Position numbers and translations under genes: made by a program. A stretch of DNA of 64,000 nt from Trichosphaerium sp. ATCC 40318 (Eukaryota; Protista; Tubulinea): positions 24,676 to 88,675 of the forward strand of contig JALMLS010000033.1 in assembly GCA_038496445.1 (NCBI GenBank). Direction: 5' to 3'. Positions 30,231 to 58,062 of this stretch are shown one piece after another (the stretch's first letter is position 1; every line of letters starts with the position of its first letter). The notes beneath the pieces were generated by a model. It was not told the DNA's origin. It saw only the letters and a list, made by a program, of their open reading frames with translations, and ran no database searches.

Positions 30231-30421
30231 GACAGAATTATTTACAAAGCACGTGTCTAAAAGCTGACTTAAATAGATATTGTTTACTTAGTTCAGTTAA
30301 ATACACAGTGTTGAACGACAACGTAATGACTTATTCAAAGCGTTGCATTCCATGAGTTCATAGGAAATGAGAACAAATCAAGAATCAATACATATTGTAG
30401 CTATTTGACCGACTGTGGGTA

Positions 30422-32364
30422 CTAATTGAATGATTCAAATATTACAGTAAGGTCTGGATTCGATTCATTAAGAAAGTTTCCATGGTAAGTAGCACGAATA
30501 TCAGATGGATCTTCATTCTGGTCTACGAAAAGAATCGTCAAAGAAAACAAAACTGAAACCTTGCAACTAGTATGCATGCTATGTTAATGCGTACCTGGGG
30601 GCTTTGTTATTTTAAAGCGTCTCACGATACTACTAATCATTACGACAAGCTCTGTCAGTGCAAGGTTCTGACCAATACAGTTTCTTGGACCAGCACTGAA
30701 TGGAATCCAAGAAAAAGAGCTTGCGTCGTTGTTAATAAATCTATCTGGATTGAATATATTTGGGTTTTCCCTGTGAGTTAACAGTTAAATAAAACCTCAA
30801 GTATTACACCACATACCATAGTTCTGGGTCACGCATCACAAAGAATATTGTCAGCAGAACGTTTTGACCGGAACTTATTGTTGTATTTCCCACGGTAAGG
30901 TCTTTGTTTAGAGCACGTGGTAAATTGATGACAGGTGGATACATTCTCAGAGTCTCCCTGTGATAAATAAAATTTAGGTTCTGACCAATATAAAGAGAGC
31001 GTACTTGATGAATGCTTTTGTGTACTTGAACTCATGAAGTTGTTGCTTTGTTGATATTGTTTCACCATCACCTTATTTGTTCATTTAGTTCATTGTCATT
31101 GGCTGGAATTGTACATACTTAGTAGGTCATTCGCCTCTTGTTTTAGTTTTTCTTGAATTTCTGGATACCTTGACATGACGTACAGTGCCCAAGCAAGTGT
31201 GATAGATGTCTAGGTTCGTATTAATAGTAAAACTGGTATGTGACATACTGTGTCAAATCCTGCAAAGAAAAATAACAGAGCTTCATTTGCTATTGTAGCA
31301 TCTGTAAGAATATCTGGATTGTCAGATTGTGCCAACAACATCAGAGTTATCAAGTCATCACAAGGATTTCCTTCGTTAATGCGTCTACGTCTGTCATCAA
31401 TAGCAGCAAATAACTTACCAAGAAGTTCAGCTTTGAGTTGACCATACTGTCTACAGACTTGTTTAGCAAGAAAGTGGAATAAAACACGAATCTCGTACTT
31501 GTATTCAAAGAGGCCAGCTGAGAGCAACTTGTACTTAAGATGTGTACCTAATGATTTCAAGAGTTTAGGGAAGTGATTCGCCAACCAGACATGATCGAAA
31601 TCGCCACCAAATATCAAAGAAACAATGATACGCATTGTTATCAGTGACGTTTCTTTCTTTGGTGTTGCTTCAAATTTACCATTTTTCATTTTCTTTTCAA
31701 TATCGTCTAAACCCTTCGCTGTCATCTCTGATATCATTGGAATCATCGCTTTCAATGATTTAAAGTGAAACACGGGTGTCAGTAATCTCCTACGGGCCTT
31801 CCAAACATCATCTGTTTGCATAGTTACAAGACCATCTCCAAACATGTCTCCGATCTACACAAAAAGTAAGTCTGACATTGTTATTTTGACCGAGAAAAAA
31901 ATGTCGTTTCGTGATGCCGTTTGGTTTGCACGTGATAAACATGACGTACAAGTTTATAATTTGCCAGATTCTTAGGCACGTTATCGCGTAATAAGAGCTG
32001 TTTAATTATACTACTATCGCTGACGCTGATAATATAGTGACCACTGACGGGGTGAATGCCCATTACTGTCACTTTATGGAGTTTGTTCTCTTTTGTCTTT
32101 GGCCATTTAATAATTCGGTTTACATAATATCTTTGTGGTATTAGTTCTGTAGTACTTGTGAAGTGTAAAAACATCTACAACGTACGTTTTAGGATCAGTA
32201 CCAAAACTCCAAGGGAATATTAAAGCGTTAGGATGCCGTGGTAGTCCAAGGTACCAGAATTTAACTTTTAGAAAACTGACAGCCTTCTTGCCATACACAC
32301 GTAAGAAAGCTGCAATAAGCGCTAACACGACGACAATTAAAATGAGTACAGCTGATGTGTCCAT
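30422..32364 (-). CDS. Cytochrome P450, copy 1
   Basis: N-terminal TM anchor, WKARRRLLTPVFH, FFAGFDTTS, KETLRMYPP, FNPDRF and the heme motif FSAGPRNCIG. Exons splice without stops. Confidence 0.95.
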
Positions 32365-33757: not shown

Positions 33758-35394
33758 GAATTAGTTTGACATGACGCGTCATCGTAATGTGAATTTAAAG
33801 ACGCTGTCACGTGCCTAAGCCTTTTTTTGTGCAGGATGGGCGGTTTGTTTGCTTTTTTTTTTCACCTTTTATCGAGATGCGAAGGAGGTTGCGCAGAGAC
33901 GTCAATACTCGTATGCGGCCGGACTAGAAGTGGTTTTAGCTAACAAGTTGTTTTTTTGTGTTTCTTCTTTATTTCAAGAGTTAAACACGTGCCGTAGTGG
34001 GTAGCGAAGTTTGGGTGTTGATTTATCCGGTTGATATTGGTAGAAGTAGTAGAAACAAGTGAGGCAATGTAGGTCCATGTTGTGAGTGTATGAGTCGCGT
34101 TGGTGGGAAGTATACCAAGAGCGAAAAGTACAGAAACTAGCCGCGCTAGTATTGCAAGGATTAAATCATACAAAGGCGTCTCCAGACTGGAGAATCACCT
34201 CTCTACCCTATAGTAAAACATTAGAAAGCGCGCTTCACACAAACTGTTAAAGTTAGTATTGTACCTTGTTGCAATACCTGTGAAGAGGGAGTAGTGGCAA
34301 TATTGATATTTAACTAAGAATTTGATGTCAAAGGAGATCCAAATTGTCAACACTCGTCATGTCGCGGCGGTCCACTAACCGTACGGCACTATGAATAGCT
34401 CTAGTACCAAGGAGTCGCTAATAAGCATCAATAGCAACAAACGCAGGTATGGTAGTGACTGTCGTGTTTAATGCTAGGTGGCTATTGAGTGCTACCCGCT
34501 TTTGTTTAAGATTTTGATAACACTAAGTTATTTTGCTTCATGGGTTCGCCATCACAGGTCTTTCTGCGCATTCTGTGCCAACAAAATTATAAGTACCGGT
34601 TGAAAAGGAGTGTTTGTAATCACGTGATGTTGAACAGTTTTTTCAGAATTATTTAAATGTCACTTGTTAAGTTTTGACTGATATTAGGTACCTAAGGAGT
34701 TTATTACGAGATGATGTATGCTACGGGATTTGTCTGCGGACACTTATCGAAACCAAACACAATTTTTTTAAACTCCGTTACAAGTACCGAAAACGGGTCA
34801 AATCGTCTTTATCTAAGATAAGAATAATACTTGAATATTAGTTCTCAACAAGAACGGGAAACCATTATAGAACACAAGCTGGAACAATTAGGACTATTTT
34901 TATTTTGCTACTGACTAACTGTTTTAGGGGATCATACCATTTTAACCTATAATCTAAAGTTCTTGCGTTGACGGAATATATGACTTTATTTAGTGCACAA
35001 CAGCTGAATTGTAAATAAACTCCTCGTTCGCAATTTGAGTACAGAAGCAGTAGCAACGTATATAAAAACAGAGCCATTACCATCAATAGAAAATAATATC
35101 ATCGGTGATTTGTCTATTGGCTACCAAACAGTCATTTCCAACATTCCAAAAATAGTTTTTTACTACATGTTCTCCATCTGCAACGAAGGAGGTTTCTGAG
35201 CTACGGACATAAACTTAGGAGCTCTGGCAAGTGGCCATAATTACGTTCACGTTAGAACATCTAAGTTTCTTGAATATAATTGTCTCCGCCTTAATGCTTA
35301 ATGGATCCATACTATGCAATGTTCAATATTATTACAGTTGGAAGCTAACAATTTATTTACAGAATAAACTTATGTACACCATATTCGGACCTTA

Positions 35395-37320
35395 TTAATT
35401 GATTGGTTCGAATAGTACCGTAAGGTCTGGATTTGGTTCAGTAAGAAATTTACCATGGTAAGTAGCACGAAAATCTGATGGATCTTCATTCTGGTCTACG
35501 AAAAGAAACGTCAGAGACAACAAAAATAAAGTTTTCAAGTTTAAATTGAATAATTACCTGAAGGCTTTGTTATGTTAAAGCGTCTCACAACACTGCTAAT
35601 CAATATAACGAGCTCTGTTGTTGCAAGGTTCTGGCCAATACAGTTTCTTGGACCAGCACTGAATGGAATCCAAGAAAAAGAGCTTGCGCCTGTTGTAATA
35701 AATCTATCTGGATTGAATGTATTTGGGTTTTCCCTGTGAGTTAACAGTTAACTAAAACCTCAAACAATACACCACATACCATAGTTCTGGGTCACGCATC
35801 ACAAAGAATATGGTCAGAAGGACGTTTTGGCCTGCCTTTAGATTTGTATTGCCCAACATTGTGTCTTTATTTAGAGCACGTGGTAAATTGATGACAGGTG
35901 GATACATTCTCAGAGTCTCCCTGTGATAAATAAGATTTAGGTTCTGTGGGGTTTTAAAGAGAACATACTTGATAAATGCCTTGGTGTACTTGAACTCAGT
36001 AAGTTGTTGCTTTGTTGATATTGTTTCACCATCACCTTATATGTTCATTTAGTTCATTGTTACTGGCTGGAATTGTACATACTTAGTAGGTCATTCGCCT
36101 CTTGTCTTAGTTTTTCTTGAATTTCTGGATACCTTGACATGACGTACAGTGCCCAAGCAAGTGTAATAGATGTCTAGGTTCGTATTAATACTACAACTTG
36201 ATAAAATGACATACTGTGTCAAATCCTGCAAAGAAGAATAACAGAGCTTCATTTGCTATTGTAGCATCTGTAAGAATATCTGGATTATCAGATTGTGCCA
36301 ACAACATCAGAGTTATCAAGTCATCACAAGGATTTCCTTCCTTAATGCGTCTACGTCTATCTTTGATAGCAACATACAACTTGTCCATTAATTCAGCTTT
36401 AAGCTCACCAAACTTTCTAAACACCTTTGTCAGATGTTAAGCTATATAAACGAATTGTACTTGTAGTTGTAAGCCCACCGAAGAGTAAATTATATTGAAG
36501 ATGCGTGGCCAACGACCTCAAGAGTTTAGGGAAGTGATTCGCCAACCAGACATGATCGAAATCGCCACCAAATATCAAAGAAACAATGATACGCATTGTT
36601 ATCAGCGATGTTTCTTTCTTTGGTGTTGCTTCAAATTTACCATTTTTCATTTTCTTTTCAATATCATCTAAACCCTTTGCTGTCATCTCTGATATCATTG
36701 GAATCATCGCTTTCAATGATTTAAAGTGAAACACAGGTGTCAGTAATCTCCTTCGGGTTTTCCAAACAGCATCTGTTTGCATAGTTACGAGGCCATCTCC
36801 AAAAAGTGTTCCAATCTAAAATCACGTTCGTCAAAAAAAACAGGAAAAAATTATCCAAAAATAAAAGTATGATCACGTGATAAGGAAAAACAGTTGAAGA
36901 TTTGCAGGTGGGAACAACGTACAAGTTTATAATTATCCATGTTCTTAGGTGCGTTATCACGCATTAAAAGCTGTTTAATCATACCACTATCGCTAATACC
37001 AATATTGAAGTCACCATTGATTGGATGGATATCCAACACAGCTAATTTATGGAGTTTATTGTCTTTGTCTTTGGCCAACGAGAAATACGGTTTACATAAT
37101 ATCTAGCTTGTATTAGTTTACTGGTAACATAAACATCTACAACGTACGTTTTAGGATCTGTACCAAAGCTCCAAGGGAACGCCAACGCGTCTGGATGGCG
37201 TGGAAGTCCAGGGTACATGAATTGAACCTTTAGAAAGCTTATAACCTTCTTGCCGTACACACGAAAGAAAGCTATAACGAAGAGTACTATGACAAGCAGT
37301 ATGAGTGTAGTTGTGGCCAT
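35395..37320 (-). CDS. Cytochrome P450, copy 2
   Basis: Same intron positions and motifs as copy 1 (FAGFDT, ETLR, PDRF, FSAGPRNCIG). Stop TAA at 35395-35397. Confidence 0.95.
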
Positions 37321-37876
37321 GTTGTGTGGGATAATACGATTTTAATTAGCAAGCTATCGTCACACTTGGAATTATACCGAGATTTCACAGTAAATTATTT
37401 TACCGGTAAATAGAAAGATAGCCCTAGATATTAAAAGTTCCGGCAAAAATAATTTGCCGTAAAAAGTTCACGCGATCAAAACATGTTTGCTTTTTTTTCA
37501 GATAATCACAAGCTAGCTTCAGATTGTACTGTTGTACAGATAGCGCTAGATAGACGATTTCATTTCGGTCCGGTGATTTGTAGTGTTAGATCCTACCATA
37601 CGACTCAACGTACACAGTATATTTTGTAGTTCACAGTTTTATCATTGCAGGATGAGAGATGAAGTTTTATTTTAAGCTATAATTTATTGAACTTGTTTTT
37701 CTATAACATCTCTCTAGTTGTGAGCAAAAAAACAGAAAATGTATCCTCTATGCTAGAGTTTGTTTTAGTGATTTGTTTTGTGATACAAACACGATTTTAT
37801 TAAAGCGCTTAGGCATCTCAATAGGAAGCCTTTTGAAGTGACATTAACAAGCAGAGCTTCTTCGCCTCTTGTTTCT

Positions 37877-38333
37877 AGCTCAGTTGGTTGAGCGCACGGC
37901 TCTCAACTGTACAGTTGGTGTCTCACACTCATTTTTGTATGTACATACATCACAGGTTTATGTACAGCCAATTGGTGAAACAAAATCCGAAGATTCTTTG
38001 CAGCAATTGGTTTTCTAGTTCATTTTCTACCAGGATTTAGAGCCTCCTTTTGATGCTTGTAGCATTATTCTATGCACTACTTCTTGTTTTAAACAAAGTA
38101 CGCAGGTAACATATAAGAAAAAAGGGCTAATAGAAGTCAATTAAGTTGCGACTTGGTGACTACCTGATACTAATGGCTTGAGTCGCAAAGTCGGTCAGTT
38201 GCATAACATCACTAATTACCTACGGCCACAATCGGCTGTACATAACCTGTGATGTATGTACATACAAAAATGAGTGTGAGACACCAACTGTACAGTTGAG
38301 AGCCGTGCGCTCAACCAACTGAGCTCAGTTGGT
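37877..38333. mobile_element. Foldback / MITE-like element with about 98-bp inverted arms headed by tRNA-Lys-derived sequence
   Basis: 37877-37974 is the reverse complement of 38229-38325 with 1 mismatch and 1 indel. Arms begin AGCTCAGTTGGTTGAGCGCACGGCTCTCAACTGTACAGT versus tRNA AGCTCAGTTGGTAGAGCGTACGGCTCTTAACCGTACGGT. Mobility is inferred. Confidence 0.6.
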
Positions 38334-38598
38334 AATCAGATTTGATCTGATAGGATGTTACTAACAGGAGGTTGTCTCGAAAATTTGTAATGAATCAACA
38401 ATATCAGAAATAGATTGTCATGTATTGAGTAAAGTCAGTCAACTAGACTTGTTTAGAATCACTTATAGATTCCACAAGAAAGTGTTAAACATATATTAGC
38501 ATTTTTAAGTAAGGGTTATTATATTTTACATTATTTAAAGCACAAAAGAAAGGAGTTATAGGTGATAAAAGATTTTTTTTCTTTCTTTTTTTTTTTCG

Positions 38599-41218
38599 TC
38601 AAGACTGAACTCTTTTTCTCTTTCTACCTCCTGGATCCTCATTCTCTTTGTTATTTACTTCATACTCATGAGTATCTTCTTTATCAGAGCGAGAACGTCT
38701 AGCTTTCTGTGTTACACTATCTCTATTCTTTTTCTTTGCTTGAAAAGTGTCGTCGCTTTCATCTTTCCACTTGGCAAGCTTTTGTTCAATCTTACGGTTA
38801 GCTCCATTCGTATCGAAACCAAGAGCTACTTCAAGTTGTTTCTTAAAGTTTATAACAAGTCTCACGTGATCTTTTGTGAATTCTTCACGTGTTTCAGAAT
38901 CAGTTAATATGACATGTAGCATATGAGCCAAGTTATTAATAAGGAAGGGAATGTACATCTAAAACGGAAAAACGAACAGTTAGAACACAGAAAATTTATT
39001 GAAATGAAGTCTTTTTATTTGTTCTATACGTACCCTGAGGTTGCCGCTGAGGTGTTTTTTTAATAGAATTGCACCATGGCCTTTGGTTGTATCAACTACT
39101 TTGGATAAAAAAGTACCCTATACATAATGTTAATACAACCTTTTGAAATTTGTTTTTAGCTAATTTTTTTGTTTTTTCAACAAACGAACCTTAAAGTCAG
39201 GACCATCATGAAGACTAGCTACAAGTTTAAACAAGTACATATAAAGCTCCTTATTTCTTGATTTGAATTCTTGAACAAAAAGTCCTGGACGAAGGCTCAA
39301 ATGGCTTAAAATATGTTGTGTCGCTAAAAGAAAAATTAGGACAACATTTGAAAATAAACAAAAAATTAATAGCAATTACCAATGCGAATCAACATGCGCT
39401 TGTAGTGATCATTATAAGATAATTTCTCTGCTAAACGAACGCCTTCTATCTTTACATCATTATTAAACCTTCTGTGACCATCTACAGCGTCTATTGGAAG
39501 ACATTAGCACAAAAAAAGAAAAACAATTTATAACACGATTATGTAAAAGTTTCCCTATCCAACGCTTGTTATTTGTAGCATAGCAAGGCAACAACAGCAC
39601 TGATAGGCAACAATATAATCGAACAAATAAGTACTTACTCCCTGATATATCAACTAGTACAGACACTAGTTTATGAAAGTTTTTACGTGTTGTCTTGCCA
39701 TTTGAAATGATGCTTAAAAAGTTTGGCTCAACAAATTCGCAAAGGCGATATAAAAGCCTAATACATCCCAAAATAGCGCTCAGTGATTGCCTGCTATCCT
39801 ATATACAATATAAGGCTCAAAGAACACCAACGACGCCAATACAGCAGAAAAACAACCAAAATCCCGAGAATATATTCGAGAGTTCAGAATATAGCTCTTT
39901 AGTTTTTGCTCCTTTACTCAACTGTCATTAGAAGACGCACCTTGAGAATCTCTGTGCAGAGAAAAACGAATTTCCCATCAATAAAACGATTCGGTTTCAG
40001 GAATAAGTCTACAAAATTCCCACTGTACGTGAGCCCATCCAAGCAATTAAATACAGCCATTTCTAATTTAGTAATCTAGATATATATATCAGGTTAACAA
40101 GTAGATTAAAATAAGCAAATAAAGCAACTAAACGAAGAATAGATCAGGTTTTTCTTCAGAAAAAAATCCAACAAATTGCGTAATTGACGTGTAGGCGAAC
40201 ATACCACAGCTGGATATGTTGGTCCTTTATTCTTTAGTATACTTCTGTGTTGTAACAGGGATTCTAGCAAATCAAGAGTTGCCTGTAAGTTATATTAGAT
40301 GAGCAAACAGCGACAGCTCAGAGCTAAAAGTTAACGCACTTGAATGAATAACTCTAGTTTTGGGTGATTTACAACCTTGTTCAAGAACGGCCTGTCATCA
40401 GGTTCTGCTGTGAATATATGCTCCATCAGAATATAAACTAAACGCATTGTATGCGCGCAAGTCTCTTTAACGCGCAAATCTAAAAAAAAGTTAAAAAAAA
40501 AGTAAAACGCAAAAACCAAAGCTCTACAGTACCACTTGTTGATGTAAACCATTTTAAATGCGTTAACTATATCTTATTAATACCATTATATATAAAACAA
40601 GTCATATTACTTGTTTTAATGAGTATCTAAAGCGTAAATATGAAAAAAGTTTTCATCCAAATTAGTCGCATTTTAAATCTTTAATTAAATTAAAACCGTT
40701 TTTAAACAGATTGTGATTGCCTATACGCTATTCAGGACGTACCAATACGCTAAAGCATAGATCAGCAATACAATCAAGACTACCAACACTAAGTAGTATA
40801 GCGTCTAGCACGAGACTAAGTCCATAGCTCGTTAAAAACAGCTTGTGGAGTAAGGTCATGGCTTGAAGTATGTATTGATGTGACGCTTGTTTAGAGTGCT
40901 CTGTGAGGTCCGAGTCTTTTGCAAGAAGGCAGGCCAGTAAATGTTTTGGTAAGAATCCGCATAATTTCTTTAGATCTATCCTGCTTTTGGCGCCAGGGTT
41001 GTATTTAGAGTGCACTGCAATGATCAAGTCTATTAAAGGTAAGAAAGTTGCATTAGTGCTGTAGAAAACGCACCATCAGCTAAGGAAACCTTTTTTTTCA
41101 GTTCTTTTACTGTAAGAGGTTCCAGAAGTTCAATTATCGTAGAATTATCAGTTACTACTTCTTCGTGTTTCTTGTGAGCCTCTTCTAGCGATTTCTTTAA
41201 AGCAACGCGAAGCGACAT
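38599..41218 (-). CDS. Homologue of the plant Nodulin homeobox (NDX) N-terminal domain, no homeodomain visible
   Basis: IDLKKLCGFLPKHLLACLL, QYILQAMTLLHKLF, VVNHPKLELFI, LLYRLCEFVEPNFL, EGVRLAEKLSYNDHYK, LFKLVASLH and DHVRLVINFKKQL occur in the same order as recalled NDX blocks. Basic NLS-like tail RKRKRVQS. Confidence 0.65.
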
Positions 41219-50244: not shown

Positions 50245-50440
50245 GTTGTGTTGCTATGTAGGTAAATGTTGATTCTTTAAACGTAAAAATATTAAATAAC
50301 ACAGGTGCAAAGAAAACCGATTGTACCTTTAATCTACTGTTAACGCGTTGGTAGTGGCAACACAACAAGACAATTGCATTTAACGAAATTCAATATTTAT
50401 TAAATTTAGATTGCACACTCAGTTAACTGAGTTGAAAAAA

Positions 50441-50513
50441 CTCCCGACGAGGGTCTCGATCCCTCGACCGTACGGTTAAGAGCCGTACGCTCTACCAACT
50501 GAGCTAGCCGGGA
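50441..50513 (-). tRNA. tRNA-Lys(CTT), 73 nt
   Basis: Full cloverleaf: TCCCGGC/GTCGGGA, GCTC/GAGC, TACGG/CCGTA with loop CTCTTAA, GAGGG/CCCTC, G73, then a T6 Pol III terminator. Confidence 0.95.
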
Positions 50514-51497
50514 CTTGTCGATGGGTTTGAGTAACGTTTATTGGGATTCTATAAAATCTAAACCTGTCAATAATTAGTTTTAGAGTAGTACGCACAAACA
50601 CCATAAACGTTCCAGTAGTTTTCCAAAACGTACACTTTATACATACAGTGCTACATTGAAAGTTGTTAATTATTGGCACATCAGAAAAGCATGACACAAC
50701 TTGCTGCTTTTCCTGTTTAACTTATTTTCTTGTTTAGGCGTATGTGTTACTTTTGTAGATGAATGTACCATGAGCCAAGTACTACAAATAGGAGCTACTT
50801 AACTTAGGTGACAACGTAAAGGCCATTACGAATGTGCAATTTTGTTTTTACATTGTGCTATAGTTCAAGATGACTCTGGCTCTCGATTGAAAGTCTGGCG
50901 AATTACCCCTACTCCGCAACCCTGTGTCACAGGTATGAGTAAAATACCTACGCAACCCATACCAAGAGAAACTCAGAGTAGTAGCTACCATTAAAAACAC
51001 AACAAGTTACTTTGTCTTTTTAAAGCGAAGATTTGAACAAACTTTTCATGCATGAATGAATATGTTATTGCACGTGTACAAACACCACAACGTCCCTTGA
51101 AAAACTTGTATTATTGTTGAGTACAATAAATAGTCTTTGTTTTGTTATGAAAATACAGCCATATTTAGGCGGTTCATTTGGCATACTTCAAGGGAACGGA
51201 AGCAGGTACTAATCCTCTTTTTTTTTTCCCCAACAAATGTGGTTCAACACCTAATATAGAGCAGCGAACTTGTAGTGAATTAGATGTTTCAAAACACGTT
51301 TAAATTGCTTAGCTTAAATTTGTAGTTCATTTTCTTTTGAAAGCAGACAAGAACTGATACAGATATGGTGCCAAACACTAACAACATTTTTTACAGTAGA
51401 GTCATAAGGACTACGGCCCCTTTTATTTAGCGCATCTCCGAGCACAAGACTACAATTTGAAATGAAGGCTAATAATGAGTTTATTAAGATAACGAAC

Positions 51498-52050: not shown

Positions 52051-53292
52051 GTTGATGAGTTGTTGTTGATGAGTATTTGAGTTACAAATGAAGATACCGA
52101 ACATAGATTGTTAAGTTGTGTACTGGTAACTTTTCCTTTTAGTCTACCTTTGATGATTAGTTGACAGGCTGCTCGCTTTTATAGTCTTGCCAATACATTG
52201 AACAACACGTTGTATATAGTTTTAGGGAGCATTGTTGTAGTTCTTTGGGTAGTATTTAGTTTTTGCTCGAATATTAGTAAAAGCTAATCTCCAAAAACAC
52301 TGTAGGAACAGCGTGCAGGTTTATTACTTCAAATCCCTTTTTGTGTTAGAAATCACTTCAAGCGATAAGTGAAAACAATGTATACAATAAAAAATTTTCG
52401 CTACATGACAGTGAGATTGAATGATTACTAATACTACGTTCCCAAAATTGTTTCTGGATTAGTTTTTTTTGGCTGTCACTATTCAATAAAGACCATTTTA
52501 AAGTAATAACAACTTTCCACTCTAACAAGAATAGAAACGTCATATGAAAACGTATTTTCTACGTACTAGGCGAGAGGTAAAGCTGTTATCTGTTCTTGAA
52601 GTTTTGACAACAGAAAACTAGAAAAATATGATGACTGTCATTTTCCGCTAATAGTACACGTGGGTGCATAAAGTTAGGCACTTGTTAGAAGACAGCAGAA
52701 TATGATTTTTAAAGCCATAAACACTATTCTACAAGTCTTTCTAGGCGCACTAGTGCATACATGTACGATTCAAATGGAATGAAATGACGGCTGACACCTA
52801 AGTAATCTGTTGTACTCGGTTTTAGGACATTGTTAACCCAAGTAGTGGAATAAATACGTGGTTTTGATATGAGAGATAAATGAGGTTGTGACTGCTATTT
52901 ATTCTCTGTCATTCAAGTTAGCAGATTTTTTGCCTACTACTACAGTATCCTTATGCAGTGGTAACAGAAAGTCACGTGTTTGCATCATGGCTACCTAAAT
53001 AAACTTAGAGTGTTGGCGGCTTGTTTTGGCCATGGTAAATATAAGAAGTACGTTATTGTTCATTTGTACGAACAAAAGCAGTGCTCCACATTTCATAGAG
53101 ATTTTTATGGAGCGTTATTTTCTTAGGTGCCAATATTTAATAACTTTCAACGTAGCACCGTGTGTATAAAGTGTACGTTTTGGAAAACTACAGGAACGTT
53201 TATGGTGTTTGTGCATACTACTCTAAAACTAATTATTGACAGGTTTAGATTTTATAGAATCCCAATAAACGTTACTCAAACCCATCGACAAG

Positions 53293-53365
53293 TCCCGGCT
53301 AGCTCAGTTGGTAGAGCGTACGGCTCTTAACCGTACGGTCGAGGGATCGAGACCCTCGTCGGGAG
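53293..53365 (+). tRNA. tRNA-Lys(CTT), identical to 50441-50513
   Basis: Same cloverleaf followed by TTTTTT. Confidence 0.95.
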
Positions 53366-53448
53366 TTTTTTCAACTCAGTTAACTGAGTGTGCAAAATAA
53401 ATTTAATAAATACTTGTTTAATAAATAAATAATATTTATTTGCTTCAT

Positions 53449-53508
53449 CTCAGTTGGTTGAGCGCACGGCTCTCAACTATGCAGTTGATGTATCCACACT
53501 CATTTTTG
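53449..53508 (+). repeat. Third copy of the tRNA-Lys-derived repeat head
   Basis: CTCAGTTGGTTGAGCGCACGGCTCTCAACTATGCAGTTGATGTATCCACACTCATTTTTG matches 37879-37937, including the non-tRNA tail. Confidence 0.85.
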
Positions 53509-57509: not shown

Positions 57510-58008
57510 CTAATTAATGTCTGCGTCAGAACACACGATACTAGAGACTACAAAACAAGCGAGTTTTAGAAACGCGTAGATTGCAATTGGTCAGCGTGCA
57601 AGAAGTAGATTGAGTGATTTTCTTTGGTAGAAAGGCTTTTTGTACAACAGGAGAGTTTTGTAGAATAAGAGGTTTTTTTAAAAGTGCATAGCCAAAGACT
57701 ACGAAGAACATACAACACCGCTAACAGACAACAATGCAATTTATCAAATTACTCGTTTCATGCTTTGCTCTGTTAGCGCTATTTTGCATGCTATTGGTAT
57801 GATGGTAGTCTTGGCAGTATAGCGTTGATCAAAGCAAAGCTCAACGAAAAGAATCAAAAGGGTTCATGTACCTCTTTAGAGTATCGAGCCATGATGTAAG
57901 AACAAACGGTCGGCGGACACTGTTTGTCAAGATTAAAGAAACAATCTTGTTAACGAAGTGAAGGACTTTAAGCCAGCCTTTTTGGCTTAATAAACATATT
58001 TTTATCCT

Positions 58009-58062
58009 TAGCTCAGTTGGTTGAGCGGGAAGCTCTTAACTGTAGGGTTACGGGATCTAGAC
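58009..58062 (+). pseudogene. Degenerate tRNA-Lys(CTT) copy
   Basis: TAGCTCAGTTGGTTGAGCGGGAAGCTCTTAACTGTAGGGTTACGGGATCTAGAC is colinear with the tRNA, but stems are broken and the acceptor arm is missing. Confidence 0.7.

Follow-up and report, generated by a model that had tools for sequence, protein, structure and literature searches.

The inverted repeat at positions 37877-38333 of the 64,000-nt stretch of DNA analysed here (the window) is in our judgement likely to be the product of a single, probably recent local inverted duplication of a decayed tRNA-Lys(CTT) gene copy, of the template-switch type. We regard this foldback as a one-off local rearrangement of a fairly ordinary kind.

The foldback is composed of two arms, a spacer and a short junction sequence:

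37877-37974, plus strand: left arm, 98 nt, consisting of the tRNA-derived unit from AGCT on and about 38 nt of local 3' flank
37975-38228, no strand: non-palindromic spacer between the arms, 254 nt
38229-38325, minus strand: right arm, 97 nt, the left arm copied in inverted orientation, beginning exactly at AGCT
38326-38333, plus strand: CAGTTGGT at the junction, an 8-nt forward repeat of arm bases 5-12, seen directly

The outer 82 nt of the arms (37877-37958 against 38244-38325) are 100% complementary, and the inner portions, up to 37974 and 38229, respectively, contain one 1-nt indel and one mismatch. At the right end of the foldback, the 8-nt CAGTTGGT completes a perfect 20-bp palindrome, ACCAACTGAGCTCAGTTGGT (38314-38333), and because of this palindrome AGCTCAGTTGGT is present at both outer ends. 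Two further palindromes are nested in both arms, namely CAACTGTACAGTTG (at 37904 and 38285) and TGTATGTACATACA (at 37936 and 38253). The layout given by an earlier, sequence-only reading of the window is thereby confirmed: arms of 97-98 bp facing inward around a 254-bp spacer, a 20-bp palindrome with the resulting direct repeat at both ends, and nested palindromes within the arms. The inverted repeat is far beyond chance. Folded as a single strand, a 475-nt stretch reaches -232.5 kcal/mol (z = -19.6), and the 27-nt head of the arm has five matches in the window, compared to 0.00 expected in shuffles. Directly 3' of the 20-bp palindrome lies another small hairpin-forming repeat, ATCAGAT-ttg-ATCTGAT (38335-38351).

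Both arms consist of a decayed copy of a tRNA-Lys(CTT) gene, about 62-75 nt in length, and the local flank that follows it. Two genes for tRNA-Lys(CTT) were identified in the window by ARAGORN, one at 50441-50513 (minus strand) and one at 53293-53365 (plus strand), and in the alignment the arm is collinear with nearly the whole gene, starting with the D arm and continuing across the T-arm relic as far as the terminator. The arms had previously been derived from the 5' half of tRNA-Lys. The tRNA-Lys origin holds, but the restriction to the 5' half does not, as the homology continues via the T-arm relic to the T-run. The left-arm unit and two related copies in the window are:

37867-37937, plus strand: tRNA-Lys(CTT)-derived unit of the left arm, 74.6 bits on sequence model R1, supported by alignment to the family and to tRNA-Lys
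53437-53508, plus strand: solo family unit located downstream of the tRNA-Lys(CTT) gene at 53293-53365 (distance about 72 nt), 79.8 bits
58000-58049, plus strand: less decayed tRNA-Lys pseudogene carrying the GGTTGAGCG change of the family, 31.5 bits

In the left-arm unit, the 5' leader TTGTTTCT is followed by the A box/D arm, the anticodon arm, the T-arm relic and a T5 run (37932-37936). The right arm scores 65.6 bits on model R1 and covers model positions 11-73 only. The D arm/A box of the arms, AGCTCAGTTGGTTGAGCG, differs from the tRNA-Lys(CTT) gene by one change. The anticodon loop reads CTCTCAA, a change of the anticodon from CTT to CTC, and is followed by the variable region. Compared with GAGGGATCGAGACCCTC in the gene, the T arm has decayed to GGTGT-CTCACACTC in the foldback and to GATGTATCCACACTC in sister copies, with two of the five T-stem pairs kept, and the T5 run comes directly after this relic. 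The 3' acceptor strand is absent and a T-rich leader takes the place of the 5' acceptor strand. Regarding the internal promoter, the A box is intact and the B box is reduced to GTATCCA versus GGATCGA in the parent tRNA. Both features of a tRNA-Lys(CTT) pseudogene are present in the arm units, i.e. collinear homology to the parent gene and loss of the functional cloverleaf.

None of the family units was called as a tRNA by ARAGORN. In an Rfam scan of 4 kb around the foldback, no known RNA family was found except for a match of the right arm to the tRNA model (24.2 bits, below the gathering score of 29), which arises because the junction palindrome mimics an acceptor stem. The minus strand of 38282-38333 can in fact be drawn as a cloverleaf lacking the T arm, with the acceptor ACCAACT/AGTTGGT, a D arm and an anticodon arm with CUC. 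This cloverleaf is most likely an accident of the junction palindrome.

To describe the family as a whole, the genome (70.3 Mb in 642 contigs) was searched with three queries: the whole element, a 25-nt pattern and a sequence model derived from nine copies. Eleven strong copies were obtained, three on the contig of the window, C216 (both arms and the unit at 53437-53508), one on C358, three on C142, two on C317 and two on C1. Three weaker family copies were also detected, including the one at 58000-58049, the only weak copy that was read. Since several copies sit in segmental duplicates, they represent approximately 6-7 independent copies; C142 and C317 are 98-99% identical over 3 kb, and C216, C358 and C142 (at 118 kb) are mutually 96-99% identical. 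A search with the tRNA-Lys(CTT) gene showed that the genome holds exactly nine such genes (nine of nine candidates scored). They are all located on C1, C142, C216, C317 and C358, and all of the strong (11/11) and weak (3/3) units are confined to these same five contigs. Thus, the unit family is tied to tRNA-Lys(CTT) clusters and not dispersed. The solo units lie within about 0.1-30 kb of tRNA-Lys(CTT) genes.

Copies are similar from approximately 10 nt before the A box (TTGYTTCTAG) up to the T-run or at most about 15 nt past it. The flanks differ from copy to copy, except between segmental duplicates. The pseudogene at 58000-58049 still has the CTT anticodon and a recognisable T loop, GGGATCTAGAC. 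As these are retained alongside the GGTTGAGCG change, this pseudogene occupies a middle position between gene and unit family; counterparts of it are found at C142:122779 and C358:8370. Altogether, the family can best be regarded as a set of tRNA-Lys pseudogenes that owe their spread to segmental duplication. Metagenome contigs, scanned by pattern, yielded 0 matches to relatives of the family, a result that is uninformative as to their absence.

The gene neighbourhood gives insight into which of the two arms came first. Two cytochrome P450 genes precede the foldback in the window:

30420-32311, minus strand: tandem P450 paralog, 83% identical to the P450 gene at 35392-37320
35392-37320, minus strand: cytochrome P450 gene with introns, recognised by Pfam PF00067 on two exon ORFs and by paralog alignments

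The left arm is located 557 bp upstream of the start codon of the second gene (37320). The region 35392-37296 is 76% identical to C142:147793-149847, and beside this paralogous P450 gene a solo unit (C142:150091-150175) has the relative place and orientation of the left arm, to which it is 81% identical over a length of 85 nt. The intergenic DNA around this solo unit no longer aligns with the left-arm region. The same P450 and solo-unit locus is present on C317. In these two contigs, the P450 gene is flanked by two outward-facing units, 147394-147455 (minus strand) and 150091-150175 (plus strand).

The family 5' leader (upstream TTGYTTCTAG, here cttgtttctAG) is kept by the left arm only. The right arm has an abrupt start at AGCT, and the sequence before it, ACCAACTG, represents its bases 5-12 in reverse complement. 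Because only the left arm retains the leader, the right arm appears to be the secondary copy. We therefore infer from the sequence that the left arm is probably ancestral, an order of events that is based on a paralog of 76% identity and on the asymmetry of the leader. The arms continue for about 38 nt beyond the T-run, a stretch absent from the other copies except that the positional paralog has about 15 nt of it. As this flank is not common to the other copies, it is a local segment that was copied, not a discrete element.

Put together, the following course of events is proposed. The starting point would be a decayed tRNA-Lys(CTT) copy upstream of the P450 gene, in a segmentally duplicated region holding tRNA-Lys(CTT) genes. 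A 98-nt piece, comprising the unit from AGCT on and about 38 nt of its 3' flank, would then have been copied in reverse complement 254 nt downstream. The second templated stretch of 8 nt at the junction, centred on the self-complementary AGCT, would represent a templated turn-around, and at least two template switches would be needed. The mechanism would presumably be template switching during replication or repair and not transposition, possibly with a contribution of fork stalling at Pol III-bound sites. Three features of template switching are present, namely a reverse-complement copy of adjacent DNA, a junction palindrome centred on AGCT and the 8-nt templated stretch. A junction with a second 8-nt templated stretch on AGCT is what one expects of template switching, not of transposition. 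It has been described that template switching produces perfect inverted repeats and hairpins (PMC5453318, PMC8794818), and that tRNA genes are replication-fork pause sites in yeast (bioRxiv 10.1101/2020.01.29.925644). Concerning the ancestral state, the paralogous locus on C142 and C317 contains a solo unit, but is just 76% identical.

The intact tRNA-Lys(CTT) genes of the window are themselves arranged in an inverted fashion:

50394-50688 / 53118-53412, no strand: divergent inverted pair of intact tRNA-Lys(CTT) genes, with 295-nt arms that are 96% complementary and a 2429-nt spacer

A second divergent pair of intact tRNA-Lys(CTT) genes, on C1 (L055:1408-1608 / 1785-1985), has 201-nt arms that are 98% complementary and a 176-nt spacer. 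The template-switch reading therefore fits its setting, as intact tRNA-Lys(CTT) genes sit in inverted pairs too. Inverted pairing concerns most of the nine tRNA-Lys(CTT) genes.

Regarding the age of the event, a recent date is suggested by the perfect identity of the arms in their outer 82 nt. Alternatively, gene conversion from arm to arm, instead of youth, could be behind this 100% identity. The history may also have had more steps, in view of a low-copy repeat inside the spacer:

38051-38215, plus strand: low-copy module within the spacer, with similarity to C72, C34, C244 and C76

In detail, 38051-38173 is approximately 81% identical to C72:146669-146783, C34:398974-399062 (inverted there) and C244, and 38165-38213 is 94% identical to C76:137749-137798. 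As shown by the low identity to the related loci, the module is older than the arm duplication. A C34 similarity that seemed to run into the inner right arm, which would make the right arm ancestral, was rejected, since its score of 14-15 is reached by 175-333 of 500 shuffles.

On C72 and C34, the module (about 115 nt) lies directly against the 5' end of a conserved, roughly 160-nt element, being oriented oppositely in the two contigs. This element is found at L004:1620-1785 (C72), L005:1593-1775 (C34) and L015:192-375 (C244), with 83% identity between the loci. Its sequence starts with GGTGCATCT, and an Sm-site-like ATTTTTTG in it precedes a stem. In a scan of the spacer-related loci, neither the module nor the 160-nt element had a match in Rfam. 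The element may be an undescribed small-RNA gene.

The preservation of the units was then considered with regard to a possible function. Among six independent copies, the mismatch to the consensus is 4.6% in the A box/D arm and 6.7% in the T-loop relic, compared to 11-23% in the rest of the unit and its flanks, and a T4-5 run follows every unit copy. The units may still bind the Pol III machinery, as preservation is best in the A box and the T-loop relic and the T-run comes directly after. These better-kept promoter boxes raise a testable question, namely whether decayed tRNA copies still recruit Pol III. A further-reaching reading is that selection maintains the units, both arms included, as Pol III/TFIIIC-bound elements, be it as short Pol III genes or as boundary elements near the P450 genes, in which case the foldback would double the site. 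The mismatch distribution and the constant T-run favour selection, as does the 81% identity of the unit between the P450 paralogs within unalignable intergenic DNA. However, the sample of 6-7 independent copies is small, short-tract conversion from real tRNA-Lys genes could also preserve the A box, and the metagenome scans, uninformative as to absence, gave no relatives outside this genome. The units also have neither a shared RNA fold nor a compensatory pair: a common RNA structure was rejected, as RNAalifold yielded 16 pairs with 0 compensatory changes and the single folds differ, with z values from -1.7 to +1.5. On balance, we consider selection on the units unlikely.

A related possibility concerns the RNA output of the foldback itself. 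The sequence-only reading had suggested convergent Pol III units giving double-stranded RNA, which does not agree with the position of the terminators. T5 runs are found at 37932-37936 on the plus strand and at 38266-38270 on the minus strand, in each case before the inner arm and the spacer. Since each unit would stop at its T5 and both would give the same sense RNA, the Pol III units alone would not yield double-stranded RNA. Hairpin RNA from the foldback needs read-through from an outside promoter, and the only nearby candidate for this is a minus-strand gene ending at 38599, 266 nt away and pointing toward the repeat.

It is conceivable that such read-through makes the foldback a working hairpin-RNA locus, in which the 98-bp stem is diced into small RNAs directed against the units or against tRNA-Lys-like transcripts. 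This would be compatible with an origin by duplication, and de novo formation of hairpin and miRNA genes via template switching has been documented (PMC8794818; bioRxiv 10.1101/2023.04.19.537475). The near-perfect stem with its folding energy and z value, together with the orientation of the neighbouring gene, is in line with such a role. Nevertheless, the locus is single and without a conserved counterpart, and the Pol III transcripts of the units, ending at T5, would be identical and not complementary; a working hairpin locus is thus rather improbable. Look-ups of exact protein matches for an ORF within the foldback and for the last ORF of the neighbouring gene, in a collection that may omit this genome, returned no entries. 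Still less probable is the combination of both ideas, i.e. that the units are lineage-specific, selected Pol III/TFIIIC-bound elements, not dead pseudogenes, and that the foldback is a newborn hairpin gene feeding RNA interference against the units or against tRNA-Lys-like RNAs. If true, this would be a regulatory small-RNA locus caught at birth from a tRNA gene.

The foldback had originally been interpreted as a tRNA-headed mobile element, and long terminal inverted arms, a strong hairpin potential and the occurrence of further copies of the arm sequence in the genome do point in the direction of a foldback or MITE-type element. Copy number and paired-arm architecture had been named among the checks, with uniqueness of the pair counting against an element. 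In DNA, pattern and model searches of the whole genome, both arms were found together at one locus only, C216:62552-63008. There is no second locus with two close convergent units in 70 Mb, and all other family members are solo units in the vicinity of tRNA-Lys(CTT) genes. Additionally, the left arm occupies an ancestral position that is common to the paralogous locus.

Target-site duplications were likewise not found, as the flanks (...cttgtttct versus cagttggt or aatcag...) have no direct repeat in common. The 12-nt end repeat AGCTCAGTTGGT was evaluated as a target-site duplication and rejected: the sequence past its right copy does not continue the unit, and its presence at both ends is a by-product of the palindrome. 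As for coding copies, the earlier suggestion of longer relatives with a transposase or reverse transcriptase found no counterpart, since whole-genome searches gave neither a longer locus carrying the arms nor an autonomous transposase-encoding relative. The 457 bp of the foldback contain no ORF above 50 aa, the longest being 50 aa. In the literature on such elements and on amoeba tRNA pseudogenes, no description of a tRNA-derived foldback element was found. Thus, the mobile-element interpretation is close to refuted and very improbable, and a candidate new transposon class, the tRNA-headed foldback element, is removed.

An assembly artefact from a chimeric inverted read built into the contig is just as improbable, for palindromic chimeras are known from long-read and amplified libraries but are usually spacer-less and at read or contig ends, whereas the present repeat is internal to its contig, flanked on either side by tens of kb of ordinary sequence, has a unique 254-nt spacer and has arms that differ by an indel and a mismatch at their inner ends.

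The preferred reading, a tRNA pseudogene duplicated in inverted orientation by template switching, was compared with known systems. In the case of template-switch inverted duplications (four-point model, Loytynoja & Goldman 2017, PMC5453318; RNA hairpins, PMC8794818), the agreement is close: a nearby segment is recopied in reverse, giving a perfect inverted repeat with hairpin potential, and the junction lies at a short self-complementary sequence, here AGCT. On the other hand, the size of the piece (98 nt) and the distance (254 nt) exceed those of the short events modelled (PMC5453318), and the extra 8-nt stretch of the foldback implies a second switch.

With tRNA pseudogenes and locally duplicated tRNA clusters, the units share homology over the whole unit to tRNA-Lys(CTT), a lost cloverleaf, copies near the parent genes and intermediates such as the one at 58000-58049. 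They differ by common derived changes (A21T, CTC in place of CTT as the anticodon, and the loss of 2 nt from the T loop), by unusually well-kept promoter-box regions and by the fact that one copy has turned into a palindrome.

Among tRNA-derived SINEs, many have tRNA-Lys-like heads. Like these, the units are tRNA-Lys-derived, have an intact A box and occur in several copies. Unlike SINEs, they lack both a tRNA-unrelated body and a tail of the LINE-like or A-rich kind, their similarity ending at the T-run or at most about 15 nt past it. Furthermore, they are not dispersed and have no target-site duplications, and several lie within segmental duplicates. Foldback (FB) transposons and MITEs resemble the present structure in their long inverted arms around a short middle and in the lack of coding capacity. 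In contrast to these, the foldback is single-copy and without a target-site duplication, there is no family with middle and arms together, and the arms exist alone elsewhere in the genome. Provided that transcription runs across it, the foldback would share with hairpin-RNA (inverted-repeat) endo-siRNA loci a near-perfect stem, about 98 bp long, and a 254-nt loop; it differs from them in having no known conserved counterpart.

Overall, the comparison fits a member of a tRNA pseudogene family that underwent a template-switch-type inverted duplication, and the locus offers a clean example of a tRNA gene cluster rearranging by small inverted duplications.
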